A stretch of 64,000 nt of DNA from Chara braunii. Lineage: Eukaryota; Plantae; Charophyceae. The stretch spans positions 4,524,847-4,588,846 of the forward strand of contig BFEA01000039.1 in assembly GCA_003427395.1 (NCBI GenBank), in the 5' to 3' direction. A program made the position numbers and the translations under genes. Positions 10,701 through 59,566 of this stretch are shown one piece after another (the first letter of the stretch is position 1; each line of letters begins with the position of its first letter). Below the pieces are notes generated by a model, which worked only from the letters and a program-made list of their open reading frames with translations, was not told where the DNA came from and did not search any database.

Positions 10701-12296
10701 CTACTGTGATTACAGCATCAGAGCCCCACATCCAACCCCCAGCTGTCCAGCCCCCAAGGATGGTCCTTCCTAATAGGATCAGATTGGCGAGCTGGAACGT
10801 TCGAGGACTTGGAGATTAAAACTCAACATTTAAAAGGGGGAGACTCTCCCAGTGGATACATGCTAATAATGTACAAATTGTTTATCTGCAAGAGACCAAA
10901 ATAGGGCCACAAAAAAATGGTAGATATCCAAAACTGGTGGGCAGGCCCCCAGATTTGGTCCCCAACCGATGGGACCAAGGGGGGAGTGGCTATCTTGTTG
11001 GATAAAAATCTGGAAGTGGAGGTGATTGACAACTGTATAGACTCGGAAGGCCGTTGGGCTTGGGTTAAACTGCCAGTTGATGACGAGGATTGGGTTGTCA
11101 TGTCTGTCTACGCCCCAATTACTAACTATGCAGAGAGAATATGTTTTTTTGTTAATCTTCCTAAGTGTATTTCGGACACAAAGAACCTCTTGATGCTAGG
11201 GGATTGGAATTGTGTGTTGAACCCGGGATTAAACTCTCCCTCCCTCGCTCCTATTAGAAACAACGATGTTCTACTACTTTCCTTCATGGAGGCCCATGGC
11301 TTGCTGAACGTCTATAGAACAATGAACCCGGATGCGTACGGTTTCACGTGGAGAGGACCGAGACCTTATGTGAGAGCTCCTCGGTCCAGGAGGAGTCTGG
11401 ATCTGATTTTAGCCAGAGGAACACCATGGGAACGTACCATGTGGTCAGAAGTTTTGTTTTCCTCCATATCTGACCACTACCATGTAGCCATGGACGTCAT
11501 TTCAAAGGAGGTAGTGGACAAATGTCGCCCGCCTTTTCGATTGAATGTCCAAATCCTCAAAGACCCTGGTATCCCGCAATGGGTCAAACACCAAATGGAG
11601 GACTAGGATAAAGCAAAAAAATTATTTGAGACCTTTGAAGATTGGGTAGATGCAGGGATTGGGATTCTTCAAGCTACTATGATCAAATTCTCAAGGATTT
11701 AGATGGCAACCAGAAATTGGAAGGAAAAACAATTGACAAGGGTCATCGAGGAGGCCGATGCTTGCTCTAACTCAAACCCCTTCTTGGAGTACTTCTGGTC
11801 CAAAAAGAGAGATAAGACGATAACATAATTAGAAAAGTTGGAAATAAGCAAACAAAGGGATTGGCAGGAATGACTGAAAGTCAGAGGGATATTCGGATTT
11901 GACAAGATGACAAAGGACACTTTTAGATCATTTATCCTAAGGAAGGCCAAACCTGTCATGAGGGAGCTTTCGCACCCTTTTGCGATAGCTGCTCCCCTAG
12001 CTACCGACATGGAGAAACTGTGTTCCTATGCCATGACATATTTTCGGGACGTAGCGTCCACACGTCGCCCCTATGATGATTTTGACTCCAATCTAGCGGA
12101 GTACACCACTTTCTGGAACTATTTAACCTCCGAGCTGTCGGATGGAATTAACAGAGCACTGGATAACCCAATCACATTAGAAGAAGTAACTTGGGCGGTT
12201 AGACAGATGGCCAAGGGCAAATACCCTGGGCCGGATGGCCTCCCTATTGAGTTCTTCCTATCTGCCTGGGAAACATTTGTTGTTTTTTTTTGTTGA
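7749..12296 (+). mobile_element. Degenerate, 3'-truncated L1-clade LINE (ORF1 + ORF2 endonuclease + start of RT)
   Basis: ORF1-like frames from 7749 include a broken zinc knuckle (C-F-*-C-QQYF-R...C near 8510-8560) followed by a long low-complexity stretch. ORF2 motifs are listed in the next feature. Multiple stops and frameshifts. Confidence 0.8.
10760..12296 (+). pseudogene. LINE ORF2 remnant: APE-like endonuclease and pre-RT region
   Basis: SWNVRGL, LQETK, VYAP, GDWN, GFTW and SDH endonuclease motifs, then LDNPITLEEV...MAKGKYPGPDGLPIEFF preceding the RT domain. Interrupted by stops; the RT core is absent. Confidence 0.85.
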
Positions 12297-14765
12297 TATT
12301 TTTAATATCACACGGTCAGCTGGTACCCTAACGTCTGGAATGCCCTCGACCCCTCGGTCCTTTCGCGTTGCTCCGATATTTTTGCATCGTCGCCTGCTGG
12401 TCTCAATCCCTTAATCTCCAAACCAAAAGTCCGATGTTGTAACCAATAGTGTTAGGCCCAAGGCTGATTTTAGCACTAGTGGTAAACCATATAAACGGGT
12501 ATTGCTACACGTGCAGGTCTGCCGAAGGCTTCCCGGTCCCACCACGCGAGTCACGACTGTGCTTCAATTTACGTTGACTAAGTGGTCGACTAGAAATAGA
12601 GAGTGTGTGGCCATGCGAACTTCGGGTGCTCGTGGTCTCTTTTCTTGTTGATGATTAAAAATTCGGCGTGGTTGCCAACTAAAATTTTAATATTTTGATT
12701 AAACTAGGACTAACGGATTTTATTTTTCAATTGGTACGCTTGACCGAGGCTTGTGCGTACATGCGAACGGCAACATCGATTACAACATGACTCTTTATAA
12801 TAAGTGGAAGGAATGTAAGGGTAGAAGTGTGGAGGCGGGCGTATGCGCGGTAGGTGCGGGGCACAATGGTTGTGGGGTCAATCGATAGGTCCAGGAACTT
12901 ATTTTCTGTCCCTTGCAAAAAACAGGGTGGATACCCTTGTGAGGGTATTTGCACCGACCGCTACAAGCTCATTTTTCTACAAGGCTGAGGTCGTGTACTA
13001 CTGGTTTCAACCCACTGTCTACATCCACTCAACTACATATTTGAACTGCATGACTAGTAGTACGACAGTATTGCATGTTGTCATATTCCCAATAGACCCA
13101 TATTACCCGATTGCCCTGATACCACTTAACTAGCTAGGTGAAAAAATAATAATAATAATAAAAATGATATGAACCTCAAACGGTCTGACGAAAGTAGTCC
13201 AACATTTTTTTTTTCCTTCTGCAGGGATCTTCTCTGGTCCTTACCAAGCCAGATTACCTTGTCAACCAAGGCGACCTGGGCGGTCCGGTTGGCAGCACAA
13301 CTATACACAACTCTATAAGAATATAATGACTATGCTAGACCGTTTCATCAGACTTTCACTGACTCGGTAAAATGTTAAACCTTAGTATTGACTGCTCAAA
13401 AGTATGTTGTGATGATGGTGAACTTATGCTGTGATTGACCCTTTGCATTTTTGTATAGGACCAATCACCATTGCTGACGAAACCGGTACCTTAGAAAAGC
13501 ATAAGATAAGTCTTACCTTGTGACTAGAAACCTAAAAGGAGCCCAATTTTGAAGATCTAACGGTGGCTACCATCTTAATTTGAAAAGCATAAGACAAGCT
13601 CTACCTTGTGACTCATAAAATAATGGTCCACATTCTCTATACTATTACCGATCGATCCCAAGTGTTTTGACTCGTTCGACTGGACTCGAAACTTACAGTA
13701 ACCTATAATTGAAATAATGTTTGAAATAATAGTGACTAATATTTTTTCAAGCTAAGCCTTTAACCACTACTGTGTCATTCTTTTGGGGTCAAGCCTTCGA
13801 AACGAAAAGGTTTGCAGCGCCAACCAAAATAAATTCATTTTTTCGCACAGAACGGTTCTACAAAAAATGGTGGGCAGCAGTGATCAGTATTGAAGAAAAA
13901 AAACGTAGAAATATATACTATTAGTTAAGGTAACGAATTGGTTTCATGGTTGAAAAATCGTAGTTTTGCATAACGTTTATCTATAGGGTAAATTTTTGCA
14001 ACGTGAGTTTGTTATGGGACAATTCTTTATTTTTTAAAAGCAAAGGAACACTGATATCATGACCTCATAAGAGCGGTCATATGAAGTTATTGTTCCTCTG
14101 TTTAAGTAAACGAGTATTGTCCCTGGGTGTGGTTGGCCTAAGACCCGAAGAGCAATAAATGAGCAACAATTTTGGCCCGCAAAGTGCATGTGGAGAACCC
14201 AAACTTTTTGATAGTAAAGAGGCAGGTACCAGTACCCTATTGATTTTTCCTATGCCGATACTGTCTGTTTTAGGCTTGGCAAAATATATTTTGTTCGTCA
14301 ATGATTTAGCTTCGGATGCACTAATGGTTTAAACTTTAAACCACATGTATCTTTCCTAACTATTTTGCCATGACGCTCCGAGCAACGTGGGAGGGTGGCA
14401 AGGTTCGGTGCTACCGGACTAAAATGGTTGGCGACACCAACCAAAATGAGGGTGAGTTTAGGTTCAGTTTCGGTAGTTGAAAAATTTACTGGTGGTTCAA
14501 CTTTAATCCCATAAATGGCATAATCAAAACACTTATGTCCGATAGACCTTCCCCAATTGGTATTTCAAAGAGTTTTTCTTACTTGCTCTATCTTCGGAAT
14601 CAGGAAACTTAGATCACCCTTGGCCTTTTAAAAATTAGGATGGGCCAATGTTTTCAATGTAGTGGTGTTCAAATATTAGTTTCACATACCAGTAGGTTGT
14701 ACTTCATAACACGACCATAGAAAGGCGCATAGTGGAACCACAAACCCTTTTTTCCCCCTTTCTCC

Positions 14766-20234: not shown

Positions 20235-21452
20235 ATGTTGTCTTTCCTGTTCACGTCGGAGTCCGTTAATGAGGGTCATCCTGACAAACTATGCGATCAG
20301 GTGTCGGATGCGATCCTGGATGCGTGTCTTGAACAAGATCCCGACAGCAAGGTGGCCTGCGAGACATGCACGAAGACAGGCATGGTGATGGTCTTCGGCG
20401 AGATCACGACGAAGGCCAAGGTGGATTACGAGAAGATCGTGAGGGAGACATGTCGAGGGATCGGCTTCACGTCGGAGGATGTTGGTTTGAACTGCGATAC
20501 GTGCAAGGTGCTTGTCAATATCGAGGAGCAGAGTCCGGATATTGGCCAAGGCGTGCACGGGATGGGAACGAAGAGGCCAGAGGAGATCGGCGCGGGAGAT
20601 CAGGGGATCATGTTTGGGTACGCGACTGACGAGACCCCCGAGATGATGCCGTTGACCCACGTGTTGGCCACGAAAATTGGCGCGAAATTGACTGAAGTGA
20701 GAAAGAGCGGGAAAGTCAAGTGGCTGCGTCCTGATGGAAAGACGCAGGTAACCGTCGAGTACACCAAGGACAAGAATGGCGCCCTGGAACCAGTGCGCGT
20801 TCACACCATCTTGATCTCGACGCAACACGACGAGTCTGTCTCCAACGACCAGATCGCCGCCGATCTGCGTGAGCACGTCATCATGCCCGTCGTTCCCGCC
20901 AAGTACCTCGACGCCGACACTATCTTCCACCTTAATCCGTCTGGCAGGTTTGTAATTGGTGGTCCCCACGGAGATGCGGGACTCACCGGAAGAAAAATCA
21001 TTATTGATACCTACGGTGGATGGGGTGCGCACGGTGGAGGGGCCTTCAGCGGCAAAGATCCGACCAAGGTTGACCGAAGCGGAGCGTACATTGTGCGTCA
21101 AGCTGCGAAGAGCGTTGTGGCGGCGGGGCTTGCTCGTCGTTGCCTTGTGCAGGTGTCTTACGCCATCGGTGTTGCCGAACCTCTCTCTGTTTTCGTTGAT
21201 ACTTACGGGACCGGTAAGATTGCAGATGGGGAAATTCTTGAAATCATCAAGGAGAACTTCGATTTCAGACCTGGAATGATCATTCAGGCTCTCGATCTCA
21301 AACGTGGAGGGAATATGCGCTTCCAGAAGACGGCGGCGTACGGACATTTTGGTCGCGATGACAAAGACTTCACGTGGGAGACGGTCAAACCGCTCAAGAA
21401 GAACGGTCAACTCGTCAATGAGGAGATGATCGAGAATTGCTTAGCTGCGTGA
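20235..21452 (+). CDS. SAMS: S-adenosylmethionine synthetase (methionine adenosyltransferase), plant type, intronless CDS, 405 aa
   Basis: [21 protein letters not shown] and GGGAFSGKD signature motifs, TAAYGHFGR. The ATG at 20235 matches the family N-terminus (the ORF track starts upstream at a GTG). Confidence 0.97.
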
Positions 21453-23882: not shown

Positions 23883-25082
23883 CGTAGTGAAAAGTTTGTG
23901 TTGATCAGATCTGTAATCAGGCGTAACTAATCAGGTAAGAATACGGCCAGAAAAAAAGGGGATGAATGGGACCTTTGAGACGAGATGGGGTGGTGATGAT
24001 GATGGCTGCTGCTGCCGATCAGCAGCATGATCAGGAATGATACGAGTCCCAATGATGAGGAATGATGGAGAAGTACGAGTCTTGACAATGGCGGCATTGA
24101 TCCAGCATCCTTTGCCCGCTTTTTGTACGGAATAGGTCGCAGGATTTGCCCGCTTTTGGTACGGAATAGGTCGCAGGATATTATGACGGGTAAGCTATTG
24201 ACCGTGTGGTCCGAGATACGCGGCGGAGTGAAGTCTCGACTTTATTGAGAGCATTCACTACATAGAACAGTACATACGTACGCCGTACGGGAACAGAACA
24301 TAAGCGGTTTTTAAGGTTTTAGTTTATCCTATCTGTAGTGATTGGTCAGATAATGCGCGCACAGCAGTGGACAGCCAGGGGCAGGTCCACTAGCAGCGGC
24401 GAGTTTCCTGAACGCCCGAGTCTGGACGTGTTTGTGGAGCTTTGCAGTTGAGGAAACTAAAACGCAATTTTCTGCACGTCTCCGCAAACACGTCCAGATT
24501 CGCGCGTTGAGCACACCCAACTCTGCTATAGTGGGACTTGGCCTCAGAGGAGAAGCAGAGGAAATTATCGGAGAAGGAATCGGTGAAGCGATGGGATAGG
24601 AAATCGGTACTTCCTTTTCTCCTGCTTTTTCGCTCCTTGAATGTTCAGAGAACCGACTTCAGGCAACGAGAAGAACCGTGAGCACAGACAAACACCGTGA
24701 GCTGGCAGATGCTTCCCGCCAAGGTGGTTGTTAAACTTGGCCACCAGATGTGACGGTCAAACGGTGACTACGTCGTACACTTGCAACAGACAGTTTAAGG
24801 AAAACGTAAGGTGGAGGGTGAATTTCAAATAAACCCCACTACACTTCACCTTTCTCTCTCTGAACCCTGAACAGACAGATGGTGAACTGCGAATTTCAAT
24901 TCAAATGAATGAGAGCCGGATGTTGCTAATGCAAGTAGAATGTCGACGACGCCACGCTTCGGTGTTGAGAAGAGGGGTCGTTTAGCCCGTACTGCAGCTG
25001 CGAGATGCGTGCGTGCTTCACGTGCGTGCCTGCGTGTGTGGGTTTTGTCAGGTTCGATATATGCCTCCACAAATGAATGCAT

Positions 25083-25362
25083 ATGACTGTGCCAGACTGT
25101 TTCGTCGGAGTTTTTTCACAGACTCATCAGTCAGTCAGGAGGTTTGAACCCCGACAGTCTGCCCAGGATGCATTTGCCACGTCGACCAGGGTTAGCCATA
25201 CCCCTGAGTCAATGTCCCGTGGTCCCCTGACCCCGGCCTGGGAGGGGCCAAAAAAAAAAAGAAAAAGAAAAAGAAAAAATAAAAAAAAATATGGGGGGTA
25301 TGCAGCAGAAGCCTGCACCCCCTGGGCGAAACTGCAAAAATGCAGTTTTGGCCCCACCTTGG

Positions 25363-25422
<60 letters not shown>

Positions 25423-25572
25423 GTTTACACCCTCCCCTGGTGAGCCCGGGGTGGCCCCACCTGACAAAAGTGGTTGACTTCACTCACACCAAACCTGCAG
25501 TCCTAGCAGACTGTCGGTCCAAACCCTGGTCAAGAACGGCCGTAAGTCTAAGAAACTGATCTGTCACAGCTG
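25083..25572 (-). mobile_element. Hammerhead-bearing non-coding element, copy A (with ~260-bp internal insertion containing poly-C)
   Basis: Reverse-complement colinear with 52601-52862 at both arms and in the spacer. (TG)n follows on the right. Confidence 0.75.
25093..25161 (-). ncRNA. Type III hammerhead ribozyme, damaged copy
   Basis: Minus strand: CAGACUG-UC / GGGGU-UCAA-ACCUC / (CUGA)2-CUGAUGA / GUCUG..CCGAC / GAAA-CAGUCUG. The core is preceded by an 8-nt CTGA slippage duplication. Confidence 0.7.
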
Positions 25573-25668
25573 TAAAACACACTCCACATACTTTGTGTGT
25601 GTGTGATGTCTGTTGTCATGCTCCCTGCTACAGAACTTCACAGAAAAAAAAGCACGACTCTGTGTGCG

Positions 25669-25725
25669 TTGTCATATTGGCTATTGGCTATACACTAAAA
25701 AAAAGCATGAGTGCGCTAGACTGTT

Positions 25726-25728
<3 letters not shown>
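25669..25728 (-). mobile_element. 5'-truncated 3' end of the hammerhead element inside a (TG)n tract
   Basis: The reverse complement CGAAACAGTCTAGCGCACTCATGC(T)nAGTGTATAG..AATATGACAA matches 52841-52893. Confidence 0.7.
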
Positions 25729-25797
<69 letters not shown>

Positions 25798-26203
25798 TGA
25801 TGTGTGTGTGTGTGTGCGTGTGTGTGTGTGCGTGTGGGTGTGAGTGTGGGTGTATGCGCTCGAGATGCACAGACAACGGCATGACTGAGACAGACCCATT
25901 GTCGGACTTTTCACCGACTCGCCAGGTGTGTGTGTGTGGTGGGGGAGAGGGAAGGTGGGTGTCACGGAACAGCCTGTGTTTTGTGGTTTGTGTTTTATGC
26001 GTGTCTGTGAGTGTTCGTGCGCAGACAAGAGAAATGACTGCTACCGATGCTTTCGTTGGACTTCCACCAGCTCGTCAGGGATGGAAGTGTCGGGGGGGGC
26101 CAGGAGGGGGGTGGGCGAGGGAAGTTGGGTGTTGCTAAAAATAGACCATGCGTCTGTGGAAACCCTTGTGCTACTGACGGAGCAAGGGGGAAGTATAGTC
26201 ATT

Positions 26204-36188: not shown

Positions 36189-37031
36189 CTACACGTGCCA
36201 CACAGGCGAGAAACACCAAACCACGGGCCCGCACGCAAATCAGTGAAATTGAGGTCATTTAAGACAAAGGTCACGTTACATGAAGGGAGCACGAAGGGAA
36301 CAGAAAAAAATCAAAGGACTAAAACAGTAGAACCGTAAAAGACAAGTTAGAACTTAGAAATCTTATGACTTCAATACTTGGGGTTTCCTGCCACTGATTA
36401 GCAGATTGGTAAGTAAATAAGTAAATACTAAAACGTTCTAAGAACTAAATTGACAAGTAAATTGATAACAAATTAATAAAAATTATTAACAATCGTAAGT
36501 CAAATGGGTTATTTAAACTTATTTAAAATTTAAAGTTATTTTGAATATATTCCCTTGTGCCCAGGCATGAATGGCTTGCAGCCTTGCGCAGACCCATGCC
36601 TGGATGCCTGGTTGGGCAGGACATCCGGGGGAGCGCAGCCCCAGTGCAATTTTCCTTTTTGTAGATCGAAAAACAATATGCTGCATAGAATTGCAATCCA
36701 AAGTTGCAAACAGCTTTTGGCTGAGGGTCATCTCAGAATTGCTTAAACCACCACTACCTTCCACAGCTGCAGTCTCAGTTGCGAAAAATGACCTCAACCG
36801 AAAAGTTCGGGAGTCGGGGCGAGGGTTGGCGAAAAGAAAAGGTTTGGGTCTTGTGGGCCCGATTGAAAAGAAAAAAAAAAAGAAGGGAAAAAATACTGCA
36901 GAGTTGAAAGGATGGACGTCCAAAAAAAAAAAAAAAAAAAGGAAGGACATCCGGGAAAAGCCACCAAGGAGGTGTGCTCACAGTAGTGCTTCCACACGGA
37001 ATGCATCTGCCCAGAATCATTGCTAGTTTCG

Positions 37032-37137
37032 TTTTTTTTTTTTTTTTTTTTTTTTTTTCCGATGGACCATGGATCAGATATTAAATTGATCAGAACGATA
37101 CTACACTTGATCTTAGCCAAAAGGCCGAGAAAGGTAT
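37032..37137 (-). pseudogene. U2 snRNA retrocopy (nt ~1-80 plus poly-A)
   Basis: Minus strand ATACCTTTCTCGGCCTTTTGGCTAAGATCAAGTGTAGTATC...TCCATCGG followed by A27. Confidence 0.92.
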
Positions 37138-38701: not shown

Positions 38702-38713
38702 TGGTATCAGAGC
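38702..38713 (+). other. tRNA-iMet primer-binding site of an LTR retrotransposon
   Basis: TGGTATCAGAGC preceded by an LTR-like CA end at 38698-38699. Confidence 0.7.
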
Positions 38714-42374: not shown

Positions 42375-42474
42375 GTCCTTCGGGACATCCGTTAAAATTG
42401 GAACGATACAGAGAGAGAAGATAAGCATGGCCCTGCGCAAGGATGAAAAACGAGAAATGGTCCAATAAAAAAAG
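42375..42474 (+). pseudogene. U6 snRNA processed pseudogene with A-tail and 16-bp TSD
   Basis: GTCCTTCGGGACATCCGTTAAAATTGGAACGATACAGAGA..GCATGGCCCTGCGCAAGGATGA..GAGAAATGGTCCAA. TSD AAAGCCATTGC(C/G)GCTA at 42359-42374 and 42475-42490. Confidence 0.93.
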
Positions 42475-44155: not shown

Positions 44156-44730
44156 GCCAGCAGCCGCGGTAACTCCAGCTACAATATCATTATTATAATA
44201 TTATCATATATTTAAGTTGTTGCAGTTAAACCACCAGAAGCCTCCCCCAGAAACTTGAGAATTAAAATTGACGCAATCTGAAGATTTCGGATGAACAGTG
44301 CTACTGGACCAAAATGGCTGGTGGCACCAGGCAAAAGAGGAAAAAAGTTCGAAAAACTTTACTGCTGACAGCCCATTTTCCTTTGGGGCGAAGTGCAAAT
44401 CCGCATTGGGAAAAACAGCCTAGGAGTCGAGGAGGTATTGGTCGTTTAAAATGCTCGTAGTTGGATTTTGGGTGGGAGGGCTCGGTTCGCTCTTGCAGGT
44501 GTCCAGTGTCCACTGGCCCTTTTAGCTGTCTTGGTGGGGGATGCACTCTTGCCTTCATTGGTATACTCTAGGGTAGGGTACGGTTGGCTATACCCTACAG
44601 TACGGCAGGGTAGGGTATGGTTTAAAATGCTCGTAGTTGGATTTTGGGTGGGAAGGGTCAGTCCGCTCTTGCAGATGTCCACTGGCTGTTTTAGCTCTCT
44701 TGGTGGGGATACGCTCTTGCATTCGTTGGT
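44156..44730 (+). pseudogene. Degenerate nuclear 18S rRNA fragment (start of V4), split by a MITE and partly tandem-duplicated
   Basis: GCCAGCAGCCGCGGTAA.TCCAGCT...TATATTTAAGTTGTTGCAGTTAA resumes after the MITE as AATGCTCGTAGTTGGATTT.GGGTGGG. A second copy starts at 44621 (176-bp period). Confidence 0.85.
44230..44445. mobile_element. TTAA-flanked MITE inserted in the 18S fragment
   Basis: TTAA-ACCACCAGAAGCCTCC ... GGAGGTATTGGTCGT-TTAA. The ancestral 18S has a single GCAGTTAAAAAGCTCG. Confidence 0.8.
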
Positions 44731-44852
44731 ATACTCTAGGGTAGGGCAGGGTTGGGTATACCCCAGGCTACGGCAGGGTAGGGAATATACACTAGGGTAG
44801 CATTGGGTACGTTATATCCTAGGGCAGGATAGGGGAGAGCAAGCTAACCAGC

Positions 44853-48313: not shown

Positions 48314-49046
48314 NNNNNNNNNNNNNNNNNNNNNNNNNNNNNNNNNNNCCTATTGTTTCTAAGTACTCTTTGTATGTTTGAGTGAGCACCTTTGAGAGGT
48401 GCCAAAGAGTAGGTGGTCCGTTGTTTGGAGTGCCTGCAGGACTCTTAGGGGATCCGCTCTGTTCGTAACGTCTGTGTGGTGCACATGGTCTATGGGTGAT
48501 ATTAGGCGTCCGCCAGAGTGACTCCCCTGGCTCAGTGGGTAGTGGGAACCAACAGTCTGCGGGGTTCACCCGTGATGTGAGTAGTTGATGAGCCGCTTTG
48601 CACCATGTTGGATGTGTGGACTGCCTTGTCTGCGCTCTGCCGCTGCCTTGCTGCCTGTCTTGCTTGTTTTGTGCGTCTTTCTTGGCAAGATGCTGTGTTC
48701 ACTGTGTAGTGTGGTTGTGGTCTTAATGTTACATTGTGCTTCACTTGTCTGCTGCCATGCTGCCCATCTGTGTGCCTTGTCTTCCGCGCCATTTGCTTGT
48801 GTGCCGTGTAGTTTGGCTGCCGTGCTGGTGCTGCCTTGTGCTTCACTGCATGGTCGCTGTGCTGCTCATTTGCTTGCCATGTCATTCCTTGCCGTTGCTT
48901 TTCACGATGAGCAGTCGTGTTGCCTCGGCAGCGTTGCCTGGTGCTTCGTTGAGTTGCTGCCCGCTGCTATGTTCCGCTTGGGAACAGTCTGCCTTCAACA
49001 AGGGTCAAATGGTTCATGACCCAAACCATCAACACGGAGATTCCGC

Positions 49047-49102
49047 AGATTGTTGAGGGTTCAGCCTCCTGATGAGTCGGTGCAACTCCGACGAAACAAT
49101 CT
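49047..49102 (+). ncRNA. Type III hammerhead ribozyme, apparently intact
   Basis: Stem III AGAUUGU/ACAAUCU, cleavage triplet GUU (after 49054), stem I GAGG/CCUC, core CUGAUGA 49069-49075, stem II GUCGG/CCGAC, GAAA 49093-49096. Confidence 0.85.
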
Positions 49103-49433
49103 TTCATCATCAGTTTTTTTTTTCTTTTTTTTCACTGTTGCTTTTTTTTTTAACTTGTACTTTTTCTTGTTTGTCGGTTGTTGTATTTTCCCTGCGTTTT
49201 TTTTGGTTGTGTGTTGTGTGCCCTCCCGCCTCCCCCGTGCTCCCCAACCTATGTGTCGCCTTGCCCTTGCTGTGTTTTCCCTGTCTGCTCCTTTTCTGCT
49301 GTTTATTGTCTTTTCCCTGCCCTTAAACTTGACTCCACTCAGATGCGTATTCTCATCCCGAGGTGCTGCGGTGGTATGGTGCATGGTCCTTTACCGTGCT
49401 GAGGCTAACTGCAATATGTGTTCACACACATCA

Positions 49434-49497
<64 letters not shown>

Positions 49498-49526
49498 ATA
49501 TGCCCCGCAGAGCAGTCACGATGACC

Positions 49527-50100
49527 AGCAGGCGATCAATAAACACATACAGAGTGCCAATCGGTCGCCCCAATTTCGCTTCCGGTGGTGGCACCTGCTT
49601 TAAGGTGTGACGGTGCAAAAGGGAAATGAATGATGGCCTGTCGGCCCTCCCCAGCTGCGTCAACTTTTTGAGCAGCCCCAAAACAAATCAGGAGGGCTGG
49701 TAGGCCTTCCCCAACTGGGCGGCAATCTGGGCCGCAAGCTGGGGCATGCTCACTTGAAGCCAGGCGATCAGGAAACACATACAGAGCGCCAATCGGTCGT
49801 CCCAATTTCACTTCCGCTCGCGGCACCTGTTTTCAGGTGTGACGCTGAAACAGGGAAACGGAACGACGGCCTGTCGGGCCTCCCCTGTGCCCATGAAGGG
49901 CCTTCCAGCCACGTCAACTTTTTCAGCAGCCCCCAAAACGGCCTTTTGGCTAGGACCAAGCGAAGTATCTGTTCTGATCAGTTTAATATCTGATCCGTGG
50001 TCCATCGGACCAAAAAACAAAAAAAAAAAACAGCAGGGCTGGTAGGCCTTCCCCAACTGGGTGGCAATCCGGGTCGCAAGCCGAGAGATGCTCATTTGAC
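49527..50100. repeat. Two diverged tandem copies of a ~235-bp unit; copy 2 carries the U2 insert
   Basis: CAGGCGATCA..AAACACATACAGAG.GCCAATCGGTCG...GGGCTGGTAGGCCTTCCCCAACTGGG...ATGCTCA occurs twice. Confidence 0.8.
49939..50030 (+). pseudogene. U2 snRNA retrocopy (nt ~11-84 plus A-tail), diverged
   Basis: CGGCCTTTTGGCTAG...GTATCTGTTCTGATCAGTTTAATATCTGATCCGTGGTCCATCGGACC followed by an A-rich tail. Confidence 0.88.
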
Positions 50101-50309
50101 ATCATCCTCACATTCCTCCAGATTATGACTGGCGATCACTCAGGAGGGCAACTAGAAACGAGGATTGCACTCGTTGCAGGTCTTAGCTGAACCTCTCACA
50201 ACAGGAGCTGACGACAGCCATGCACCACCTGTTCCTGAAGGAACGCCCTCTTTTCAGAGGGACTCGCAGCATGTCAAACCCTGGTAAGGTTCTTCGCGTT
50301 GCATCGAAT
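50096..50309 (-). pseudogene. Degenerate plastid-type 16S rRNA fragment (roughly E. coli 960-1200)
   Basis: Plus strand contains GAGCTGACGACAGCCATGCACCACCTGT, GCATGTCAAACCCTGGTAAGGTTCTTCGCGTTGCATCGAAT and TTGACATCATCCTCAC, with many substitutions and deletions. Confidence 0.85.
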
Positions 50310-50571
50310 GAGCACCTTTCAGGGGCCCAAATTGCGGGCCGATCACCGAAGTTCAAGACCGGCCCGCGATTTGGGTCGTTGTGCAAGGAAAGGCCCAGAT
50401 CGGCGGTCGATCACCAAAAAAATACGATCAGCCTGCCTTCTGCGCCCTCCGCAGATGCGAATGGCCCAGATTGGCAGTTAATCACCAAAGAAATAAGATC
50501 AGCCTGCAATCACGGCCCTCTGTGCATGTGAACAGCACAGATCGCGGGCCGATCTTCTTTTTGGGTGATCA

Positions 50572-51529: not shown

Positions 51530-52516
51530 TAGTTAAACACACTATCCTTGTGGAGCGCATATCCCGCTGCAGGCATGTGATGGTCCTGCAGGCATATGGT
51601 TGGAGTATACAAACATTTACGTAAACTTCGTAAAGGACCACTAGGTCCACTACCCTTGACGTTTCGGGTGGCGGGCCTCCAAATTCGAATTCGGACGCCG
51701 GGAGCTGCTGATGGAAAATATAAGCGGCTGCGCGGCGCCGAATTTTCTGGAGTTGGTTACATTTGCGACTTGGCGTCCAGTGACAAAGGTAGTGGTGGTT
51801 ATAAGGAGTACTCTTCAGAAGCACTGAAAGAAGACGTTGCCAAAATTACATCTACTGCCACTACTGGTCCATATATCTTCATTCTGAAGGTGTCCAGGAT
51901 CATCAGAGCTCTTCTTTCATGCACGTTCCTCATCATCAGGAAGAGAGGAAGGAAAAAGGAGAAGCACGTCCCAGCTCTCCAGTCATGCATGTTCCTCTTA
52001 ACTGCTGTCTTATCCTTTCTACTTCCTCCTCATGATACATTCTCTTGTAAAACAGGACATGCTTTTTTCCCCCCAAAAGAAAAGTCACAGTCTCATCCGA
52101 TTCTAGCTTGCCTTGTCACATCTTTCCTGTAATCTTGGTTACTTGCCCTCCTTAACCAAACCTCTCTTCTTTTCCACCTCTTAGGCTCGCTGGCCTAGCG
52201 GCTTTTCTGCAGTGCTCTGCCGCCACCAAAAGAGAAGGAAAAACGCCACCATGTCAGCCATGTTTTGATTGGTTGGCACTTGCACAGGAGTAGAGTAGAG
52301 TGAGCACAGCGTTGTAGGTAAATACCAGAAGTCTCAGAACCTTCAGGAGCTATGTGTGAACACTGTGAACTGCTGCTGTTGTGCTTTTTTGGGGGGTTGG
52401 GCATTGATTCACGCAAAGGACTTCTTTTAGTTTCGCAAAAAAAGAAGTAAGCAGGACGATGTGCAAGAGGGACACATCACGTCACTCACTCAATCACTCA
52501 CTCCCTTAATTGCTCA

Positions 52517-52588
<72 letters not shown>

Positions 52589-52589
<1 letters not shown>

Positions 52590-52891
52590 GAGTGGGTTTT
52601 ATGACTGTGGCAGATTAGTTTCTCAGACTTACTTCCGTTCTTGTCAAGGGTTTGGACCAGGTTCAGACCCGCTAGGATTGCAAGCTTACGTTGGTGTGAG
52701 TAAAGTCGACCACTTTTCTCTCTCACTGGGGTGTCGCTAACTCTGGGCGATGTGGTGAGTCGTTATCCATCAGTGAAATGAATCCTGGGCAGACTGTCGG
52801 GGTTCAACCTCAGCCTCCTGACGAGTCGGTGAAAGTCCAACGAAACAGTCTGGCACAGTCATGCATTTTTTGAGTGTATAGTGAATATGAC

Positions 52892-52893
<2 letters not shown>
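52589..52893 (+). mobile_element. Hammerhead-bearing non-coding element, copy B (complete, between two (CA)n tracts)
   Basis: Inverted termini ATGACTGTG(G/C)CAGA..GTTTC (52601-52622 / 52842-52862), a hammerhead in the right arm, a short tail ending AATATGACAA, and (CA)n on both sides. Confidence 0.8.
52790..52852 (+). ncRNA. Type III hammerhead ribozyme
   Basis: Stem III CAGACUGU/ACAGUCUG, GUC triplet (cleavage after 52798), stem I GGGGUU/AGCCUC, CUGACGA 52818-52824, stem II GUCGG/CCAAC (one mismatch), GAAA 52842-52845. Confidence 0.85.
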
Positions 52894-52966
<73 letters not shown>

Positions 52967-53524
52967 ACACACACAGGTTGCCAGCCTTGTAAGTGAGAGG
53001 CACAGTGAAAAGGGAGCTGCAAGAACAAGTAAAAGGGGGGGATCTTTTCTTTGCAAGGAAAAAAAAAAGGGGTGCCCCAAAGAAAGCCAAAGTAAAGATA
53101 GTCAAGAAAGGGATATAATGGATCTATCCTGCTGCAAACTTTTTCATTGTTGAATTGGCTCATCTGAAGTGGGCTTCATTGTCTGCAAAAGAGGGAAAGC
53201 TGCTTCGATTTTGGATCTACTCATCTGTGTGGAACACAGGCTGTTGTGGTGAAAATCTACAACACGCACACAAACACCCACACCCACACCCACACCCACA
53301 CCCACACCCACACCCACACCCACACAGACACACACACACACACAGACACACACACACACACAGACACACACACACACCGAGTCGTTAACAAAAAACTCGT
53401 TCCTAAACCCTGCCCAAGCAATCCCCTTATGTACAAGGCAGGGGTCTAGAGGATTATTCTGCATCCTAAGCATCCTTTCCAATGTCAAATCAGATGTTCC
53501 CAAAATGCATTTCAAGAAACCTAC

Positions 53525-59401: not shown

Positions 59402-59566
59402 CCTTTAAATTCCGAATATGGCAAAGTTGCTCCTGGTTGGGGGACTACTGTTTTAATGGGGATTTTTATGGCTCTTTTTGCAGTATTTTTGGTGATTATT
59501 TTAGAGATTTATAATGCATCAGTATTGTTAGATGGTATCTCGGTTAGTTGGGCAAGTTTAGTTTAG
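59402..59566 (+). pseudogene. psbH: 5'-truncated plastid psbH within an AT-rich plastid-like insert (~59113-59700)
   Basis: [54 protein letters not shown]. No start codon; an in-frame TAA lies just upstream. Confidence 0.93.

Follow-up and report, generated by a model that had tools for sequence, protein, structure and literature searches.

Non-coding elements with type III hammerhead motifs in Chara braunii: a dispersed family probably related to Chlamys-clade Penelope-like elements

The hammerhead-bearing loci found in a 64,000-nucleotide stretch of Chara braunii DNA, referred to below as the window, are probably copies of an abundant non-coding retroelement, namely non-autonomous derivatives and 5'-truncated 3' ends of hammerhead-bearing Penelope-like elements of the Chlamys clade. 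We put the probability of this reading at roughly 0.65; the assignment to Chlamys elements was made from the published description of their traits.

Chlamys Penelope-like elements have been described in C. braunii, some of them at very high copy number, and both Chlamys-2_cBra, which has a gag-like ORF, and the endonuclease-less PLE-X carry canonical 3' hammerheads in this species (Craig et al. 2021, PMC8557442). According to the same study, many Chlamys elements target (CA)n and (C)n, and they show frequent 5' truncation, pseudo-LTRs and inverted 5'-truncated copies. Non-autonomous derivatives that retain the 3' ends of autonomous families were reported in Chlamydomonas reinhardtii, not in Chara (PMC8557442).

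The Chlamys-type traits found in the window were 1) a hammerhead in the 3' region, 2) 5' truncation, together with stacks and inverted copies, and 3) a bias for (CA)n. Each structural trait that could be tested here fits the published Chlamys description. The original prediction had allowed that the elements might match a Penelope-like terminus already on record, and hammerhead-bearing Penelope-like elements of C. braunii have indeed been published (PMC8557442), so that most of the novelty is gone and the family is a modest extension of known biology. Three features were not found in the published texts that were compared: the hairpin-shaped unit of ~305 nt, a type III hammerhead in a Penelope-like context and a strand-specific (CA)n junction with the fixed terminus ATATGACAA.

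Hammerhead motifs in the window

Three complete type III hammerheads had been predicted, and searches with the Rfam model RF00008 (Hammerhead_3) and a covariance model, designated R1, located all three within 1 nt of the predicted positions (Table 1). The core CUGA(C/U)GA with GAAA, the cleavage triplet GUC or GUU, the type III topology, which follows from the motif ends falling in stem III, and the change of a stem III pair from C-G in copies A and B to U-A in copy C were all as claimed. With RF00008, copy A (52791-52851, + strand) scored 38.1 bits (E 1.1e-5 in a 6-kb search), copy B (25094-25160, - strand) 34.0 bits (E 9.1e-5 in a 3.5-kb search) and copy C (49054-49102, + strand) 23.4 bits (E 0.16). 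The matches of copies A and B were still significant once scaled to 64 kb. A default Rfam search of the whole window returned no hammerhead, because all three copies score under the gathering threshold of 48.5 bits, and the E-value mode was needed.

Model R1, built from copies A, B and C and run unfiltered across the whole window, gave these three copies 86.4, 71.9 and 78 bits, respectively, and also recovered decayed relatives at 26045-26092, 13337-13396 (copy F, 24.1 bits, E 2e-4) and 25901-25925, all on the - strand. A 3' fragment at 25682-25729 on the same strand was added by blastn, which brought the family to seven loci in the 64-kb window. The prediction had counted at least five, and the two fragments that it listed are among the seven.

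Table 1. Coordinates of the hammerhead-bearing family and its flanking repeats in the window
Feature	Position	Strand	Evidence or sequence
Unit A, complete non-coding element of ~305 nt with a (CA)n tract on each side	52589..52893	+	blastn self-search; TRF flanks; run-X5 contig
Unit A, 5' arm: decayed inverted copy of hammerhead and 3' box	52590..52690	+	alignment A1; local matches 19/22; inverted repeat
Unit A, conserved 3' box (GGCACAGUCAUGC...) and 3' terminus ATATGACAA (52885-52893), adjoining (CA)n	52852..52893	+	sequence; consensus of RNA-read loose ends
(CA)37 microsatellite, 5' flank of unit A, presumed target	52515..52588	+	TRF
(AC)41 microsatellite, 3' flank of unit A, presumed target	52893..52975	+	TRF
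Type III hammerhead of unit A (copy A)	52791..52851	+	Rfam; model R1
Copy A, stem III	52791-52797 / 52845-52851	+	AGACUGU / ACAGUCU
Copy A, cleavage triplet GUC	predicted cut after 52798	+	Rfam
Copy A, stem I	52799-52817	+	
Copy A, core CUGACGA	52818-52824	+	
Copy A, stem II with C.A mismatch (A at 52839)	52825-52841	+	
Copy A, GAAA	52842-52845	+	
Unit B, a further complete unit that shares both ends with A	25043..25584	-	blastn; sequence; ~76% identity in both arms
Copy B hammerhead	25094..25160	-	Rfam; R1; MFE fold not a hammerhead
Three 5'-truncated 3' ends, stacked in one orientation immediately upstream of unit B	25682..26092	-	blastn; sequence; R1
Copy C hammerhead, best preserved	49047..49102	+	Rfam; R1; MFE fold; flanks
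Copy F, full-length decayed hammerhead, core lost, 3' box present, no nearby (CA)n	13326..13396	-	blastn; R1

In copies A and C, the open stem III has 7 bp, and the closed stems I and II have 4-5 bp and 5 bp, respectively. The description of all three folds as complete stood as far as the presence of the motifs is concerned, but copy A has a mismatch in stem II, copy B is probably inactive, since an 8-nt CUGA duplication separates its stem I from the core, and only copy C adopts the hammerhead as its MFE fold (39% of the ensemble), that of A not being the full hammerhead and that of B not being a hammerhead. In copy C, the core and the 5-bp stem II are perfect, stem I has 4 bp and the triplet is GUU, with the predicted cut after 49054. 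The four other copies lack core residues or entire stems, core residues having been lost in copies D, E and F, and the copies in the window are mostly dead, decayed or shortened.

Several comparisons bear on constraint on the motif. A six-sequence alignment, which was fitted to the model with the decayed copies partly forced in, had 86.9% of its cells paired and seven doubly changed pairs, the latter number being reached by 1 of 500 shuffles. In addition to the stem III change, similar double changes were seen in stem II of copies E and F. The covariation is weak, since the alignment was model-fitted and the reliable double changes were all transition pairs, which could have arisen by methyl-C decay on the two strands; the caveat that had been attached to the stem III change therefore stands. 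The family majority letters in the RNA reads described below, T at position 52822, which is core residue U7, and G at position 52839, which gives C-G in stem II, restore canonical features that copy A has lost and argue better for constraint than the covariation does. Constraint is also indicated by the mean column identity of 82% that the hammerhead retains between the A/B subfamily and copy C, a member of a diverged subfamily with unrelated upstream sequence and a (CA)n tract downstream at 49423-49498.

A metagenome scan with the hammerhead pattern gave no matches. A scan with the 3'-box pattern gave 13, none of which carried a hammerhead according to R1, and these were attributed to chance.

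The 305-nt unit and its insertion sites

Within its 305 nt, unit A had no meaningful ORF, no tRNA-like part and no tRNA, 7SL or 5S-like head (Rfam and tRNA search). A copy of ~300 nt lacking an ORF and lying between (CA)n tracts had been predicted, and this was borne out. The hammerhead cleavage site lies 95 nt ahead of the 3' terminus.

The 5' third of the unit is a decayed, inverted copy of the hammerhead end, a feature that the original prediction had overlooked. A repeat search of unit A identified 52601-52630 and 52833-52862 as the arms of an inverted repeat that are 73% complementary. When reverse-complemented, the 5' arm of unit B retains GCAGACUGUCGG, and the reverse complements of the 5' arms of both A and B keep GAAAC..AUCUG.CACAG in the correct order; the local matches on which the homology of the inverted arms depends are short and statistically weak (E about 0.01, the search space being tiny). 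Between A and B, identity was 75.5% for the 5' arms and likewise for the 3' arms, while each arm was only 42-55% alike to its own inverted partner, indicating that the head-to-head composite is old and was inherited as one unit. Most likely, the ~305-nt unit is a single head-to-head product that now propagates whole.

Neither Rfam at E<=10 nor R1 run unfiltered found a minus-strand hammerhead in the 5' arms of A and B. In the alignment, the inverted core was lost identically in A and B, and no hammerhead fold was predicted for it. By its sequence, then, the inverted 5' arm is no longer a ribozyme on the minus strand. In the MFE structure of the unit A RNA, the 5' arm and the hammerhead arm are base-paired to each other (z = -2.7), an arrangement that is predicted to compete with the active fold.

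Unit B, which likewise lies beside CA repeats, is split by a foreign insertion of ~260 nt that carries a 57-nt homopolymer run (25364-25420). In the inserted segment (25200-25462), the homopolymer reads as C on the + strand and is accompanied by a long tract rich in T and by internal inverted repeats (GGTGGGGCCAAAA / TTTTGGCCCCTCC); TCAGG(T)GGGG may be a duplication of the target. For comparison, Chlamys elements are reported to target (C)n besides (CA)n (Craig et al. 2021, PMC8557442).

The association with (CA)n was strand specific. A family piece lies at most 350 nt from four of the five perfect (CA)>=12 arrays in the window, with CA always on the sense strand of the element, and from none of the 14 (GA)n/(TC)n arrays (Fisher p about 0.001 versus (CA)n). 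Each member of the stack (26092-26040, 25926-25879 and 25729-25682) is preceded by a CA-rich repeat. The terminus ...ATATGACAA(CA)n is common to unit A and the fragment at 25729-25682, and nearly so in unit B. Taken together, the ragged 5' truncation, the stacking, the head-to-head arms and the strand-specific insertion into microsatellites constitute a signature of target-primed reverse transcription, unlike that of LTR-type or cut-and-paste transposition. Between the (AC)41 tract of unit A and an (ACACAC)n tract at 53262-53377 there is an unrelated sequence of ~290 nt (52976-53262), which may be another element in the same microsatellite.

No usable reverse transcriptase, GIY-YIG or zinc-knuckle ORF was present in the window, as determined by six-frame scans for Y/F-x-DD, GIY..YIG and CCHC, and a Pfam search of ten large ORFs detected only an S-adenosylmethionine synthetase and an L1-type endonuclease, and hence no autonomous partner. 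The search for a reverse transcriptase or GIY-YIG ORF that the prediction had proposed was thus negative within these 64 kb. The synthetase gene (20235-21452, + strand) is intact and intronless and encodes 405 aa with all three Pfam domains. Its ORF (20235-21449) has a single occurrence, on contig BFEA01000039.1 of NCBI assembly GCA_003427395.1, an accession cited in papers on C. braunii, which confirms the host species. The ORF at 10905-11603 (+ strand) has an L1-type apurinic-like endonuclease domain (Exo_endo_phos, E 3.5e-7); no reverse transcriptase motif was found downstream of it, and it is probably a LINE remnant.

The window also contains several sequences related to structural RNAs. 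A U2 snRNA pseudogene with an A-rich tail (49926-50035, + strand) lies 25 nt from a 257-nt fragment that matches bacterial or plastid-type 16S rRNA (50060-50316, - strand, 118.8 bits). Both are embedded in a local duplicated repeat (49529-49652 ~ 49761-49885 ~ 50022-50099), and the pair has the appearance of a chimeric retrocopy produced by template switching. A second U2 pseudogene (37027-37137, - strand) is truncated and passes into a run of A, and the U6 snRNA copy at 42375-42471 (+ strand) ends in A instead of U; these two are probable retropseudogenes. At 59407-59467 (- strand), the plastid psbN 5'-UTR RNA is matched over its full length (RF04353, 54.6 bits, over the gathering threshold); this is probably either plastid DNA that was inserted into the nuclear genome or a retrocopied plastid RNA. 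Finally, a 168-nt tandem duplication at 44444-44783 was unreported by Rfam at the gathering threshold; we take its unit (..GCTCGTAGTTGGATTT..) to resemble the V4 region of eukaryotic 18S rRNA.

RNA reads and modes of propagation

Two raw oligo-dT RNA-seq runs (2026) and two older contig runs were aligned to 52590-52892 at a likeness of at least 80%. Thousands of reads matched unit A, the majority of them less than 95% alike, so that most of the matching reads come from other copies. The family is expressed, multi-copy and dispersed, and the high copy number that had been predicted was confirmed. In run X5, the depth was 344 at the 5' end and reached 57,345 at 52832-52842, and in the raw RNA run X13 it rose from about 16 to about 850 reads at 52832-52853, the coverage of the 3' end of unit A being ~100 times that of the 5' end. 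A dip in depth at 52799-52809 coincided with the variable stem I and loop. The loose ends of the reads consisted of (CA)n before 52810-52824, and behind 52871 they converged on ...ATATGACAA(CA)n. One contig of run X5 spans 52604-52872 at ~81% identity and thus represents a third full unit.

Between 84 and 88% of the aligned reads continue into unrelated sequence, so that most of the signal is passive co-transcription of fragments. One relative elsewhere in the genome shows high expression in poly(A) RNA, two runs contributing about 240 and 330 reads over 52763-52798; it has fixed flanks and a core mutated to CUGAUCA, is read through at the cleavage site and probably sits in the UTR of a host gene.

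The prediction had described a ribozyme-processed, non-autonomous retroelement. The dispersed, non-coding type III family was borne out, but processing was not: the raw oligo-dT reads, which come mostly from truncated or mutated copies, showed no pile-up of ends at 52798/52799, and in vivo cleavage is therefore unsupported. Nor did the raw RNA contain back-joined reads, an absence that carries little weight because oligo-dT libraries would miss circles. Joints that "go back" (52862>52590 and 52863>52611) occurred only in contigs of runs X5 and X1, which are of uncertain kind, with unknown letters between the joined parts, and they are explained by head-to-tail stacks in the genome.

These joints bear on the proposal that the elements are non-LTR retrozymes, in which two hammerheads cut tandem or dimeric transcripts, and the products are ligated to rod-like circles of ~300 nt that act as intermediates of transposition, or even of replication, as has been put forward for metazoa. 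The size of the unit, its lack of coding capacity and its self-complementarity are as expected for such circles, and the contig joints could be read as traces of them. However, a direct pair of intact hammerheads occurs nowhere in the window, stem III/I or core residues are missing from the stack copies, and the joints are absent from the raw RNA, evidence that is weak in oligo-dT libraries, while genomic stacks account for the contigs. We consider this proposal unlikely. It is compatible with dependence on Penelope-like elements and does not exclude it (10.64898/2026.07.22.740005); the combined form, in which the intact members are type III non-LTR retrozymes of a streptophyte alga whose ~300-nt circles are copied into (CA)n by a Penelope-like reverse transcriptase, is likewise given a low probability.

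A SINE-like element moved by a LINE with transcripts that end in (CA)n, the microsatellite being the tail of the insertion and the hammerhead a captured passenger, would also show 5' truncation and a 3' end of simple repeats, which are typical of LINE-dependent elements, and the endonuclease ORF shows that an L1-type sequence is present in the window. What makes this quite improbable is that (CA)n flanks both sides of unit A and lies upstream of the truncated copies, as expected for insertion into an existing array, that Penelope-like elements are typified by inverted arms arranged head to head and by a hammerhead at the 3' end (PMC8557442), and that the unit has none of the SINE-type heads that were looked for. 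The terminal inverted similarity of unit A and the ordered hammerhead residues in its reverse-complemented 5' arm could, in turn, be taken for a viroid-like rod with hammerheads of both polarities or for a MITE, a DNA transposon with terminal inverted repeats. The failure of both covariance models to detect a minus-strand hammerhead and the loss of the inverted core in A and B speak against the viroid, and the roughly 100-fold excess of 3' over 5' sequence, with ragged 5' truncation, opposes a cut-and-paste mechanism; either form of this idea is very improbable.

Dependence on Chlamys-type Penelope-like elements is thus the preferred reading. For this family we infer self-cleavage, the identity of the mobilizing enzyme and the priming step, in the following scheme. 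A copy would be transcribed, often by read-through from its surroundings, and the type III hammerhead of an intact copy would free the RNA from upstream or tandem sequence, cutting ~95 nt ahead of the 3' terminus. The 3' end of the RNA, ...ATATGACAA followed by CA repeats, could then pair with the nicked TG strand of a (CA)n microsatellite, where a Penelope-like reverse transcriptase acting in trans would copy the element RNA by target-primed reverse transcription. The excess of 5'-truncated copies, the head-to-tail stacks and the head-to-head inverted arms would result when copying was incomplete or the enzyme switched strands.

Comparison with known systems

The closest likeness is to the Chlamys elements of the same host species, with which the family shares the 3' hammerhead, insertion at (CA)n, high copy number, 5' truncation, head-to-tail stacks and inverted 5'-truncated copies. 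It differs from them in that no coding partner was found in the window and in that the hairpin-like ~305-nt unit is absent from the text of PMC8557442; the topology of the Chlamys hammerheads is not stated there. Like MRC1, a non-autonomous Chlamys derivative of Chlamydomonas, the family is non-coding and has probably retained the 3' end.

Angiosperm retrozymes (Cervera, Urbina and de la Pena 2016, PMC4918200) are also non-coding, non-autonomous elements of green-lineage hosts that carry type III hammerheads with a stable stem III, and their RNA, like that of the Chara unit, is predicted to fold on itself. They have LTRs of ~350 bp, a tRNA-Met primer binding site (PBS), a polypurine tract (PPT) and a direct pair of hammerheads within 600-1000 nt, whereas the 305-nt Chara unit is without these (PMC4918200). 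The only direct repeats around unit A were the microsatellites, there was one hammerhead per unit, and no PPT was seen in unit A by eye. The tRNA-Met PBS motif TGGTATCAGAGC occurred once in the window, at 38702, far from every copy; it hints at an LTR retrotransposon near 38.7 kb that is unrelated to the hammerhead copies. Since there is no LTR, no PBS near the copies and no second direct hammerhead, the family is not an angiosperm-type retrozyme, in agreement with the original prediction, and the siting in microsatellites and the ragged 5' truncation point to target-primed integration instead of the LTR-type integration of the angiosperm elements.

The non-LTR retrozymes of metazoa resemble the family in their small size (170-400 nt), their lack of coding capacity and a probable relation to Penelope-like pseudo-LTRs; they have been argued to be non-autonomous derivatives of Penelope-like elements (Li, Clavereau and Pollet 2026 preprint, 10.64898/2026.07.22.740005). 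They differ in having type I hammerheads and tandem arrays of full units that give rise to circles, whereas the Chara hammerheads are of type III and the units in the window are single or truncated, with no tandem full units. The pseudo-LTR hammerheads of Selaginella Penelope-like elements (Cervera and de la Pena 2014, PMC4209133) share with the Chara motifs the canonical three-helix structure and a host of the plant lineage, but they are type I (PMC4209133) and those of Chara are type III, a difference that counts against the Penelope-like reading.

If the link to Chlamys elements is true, a Penelope-like system of the plant lineage has a stable, monomeric type III hammerhead, as do angiosperm retrozymes and viroids, instead of the type I known from other Penelope-like elements, and has given rise to a short non-coding parasite with the shape of a hairpin, whose integration into (CA)n is strand specific. 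The Chara family would then be relevant to the proposal that retrozymes and viroid-like RNAs descend from Penelope-like elements. If the elements do pass through circles in the manner of retrozymes, they would be a missing link on the route proposed by de la Pena, from Penelope-like elements to angiosperm retrozymes and hammerhead viroids. The segment at 49040-49110 is a concrete substrate for cleavage assays. For annotation, the family accounts for many short hammerhead matches in the Chara genome and for part of its (CA)n landscape.
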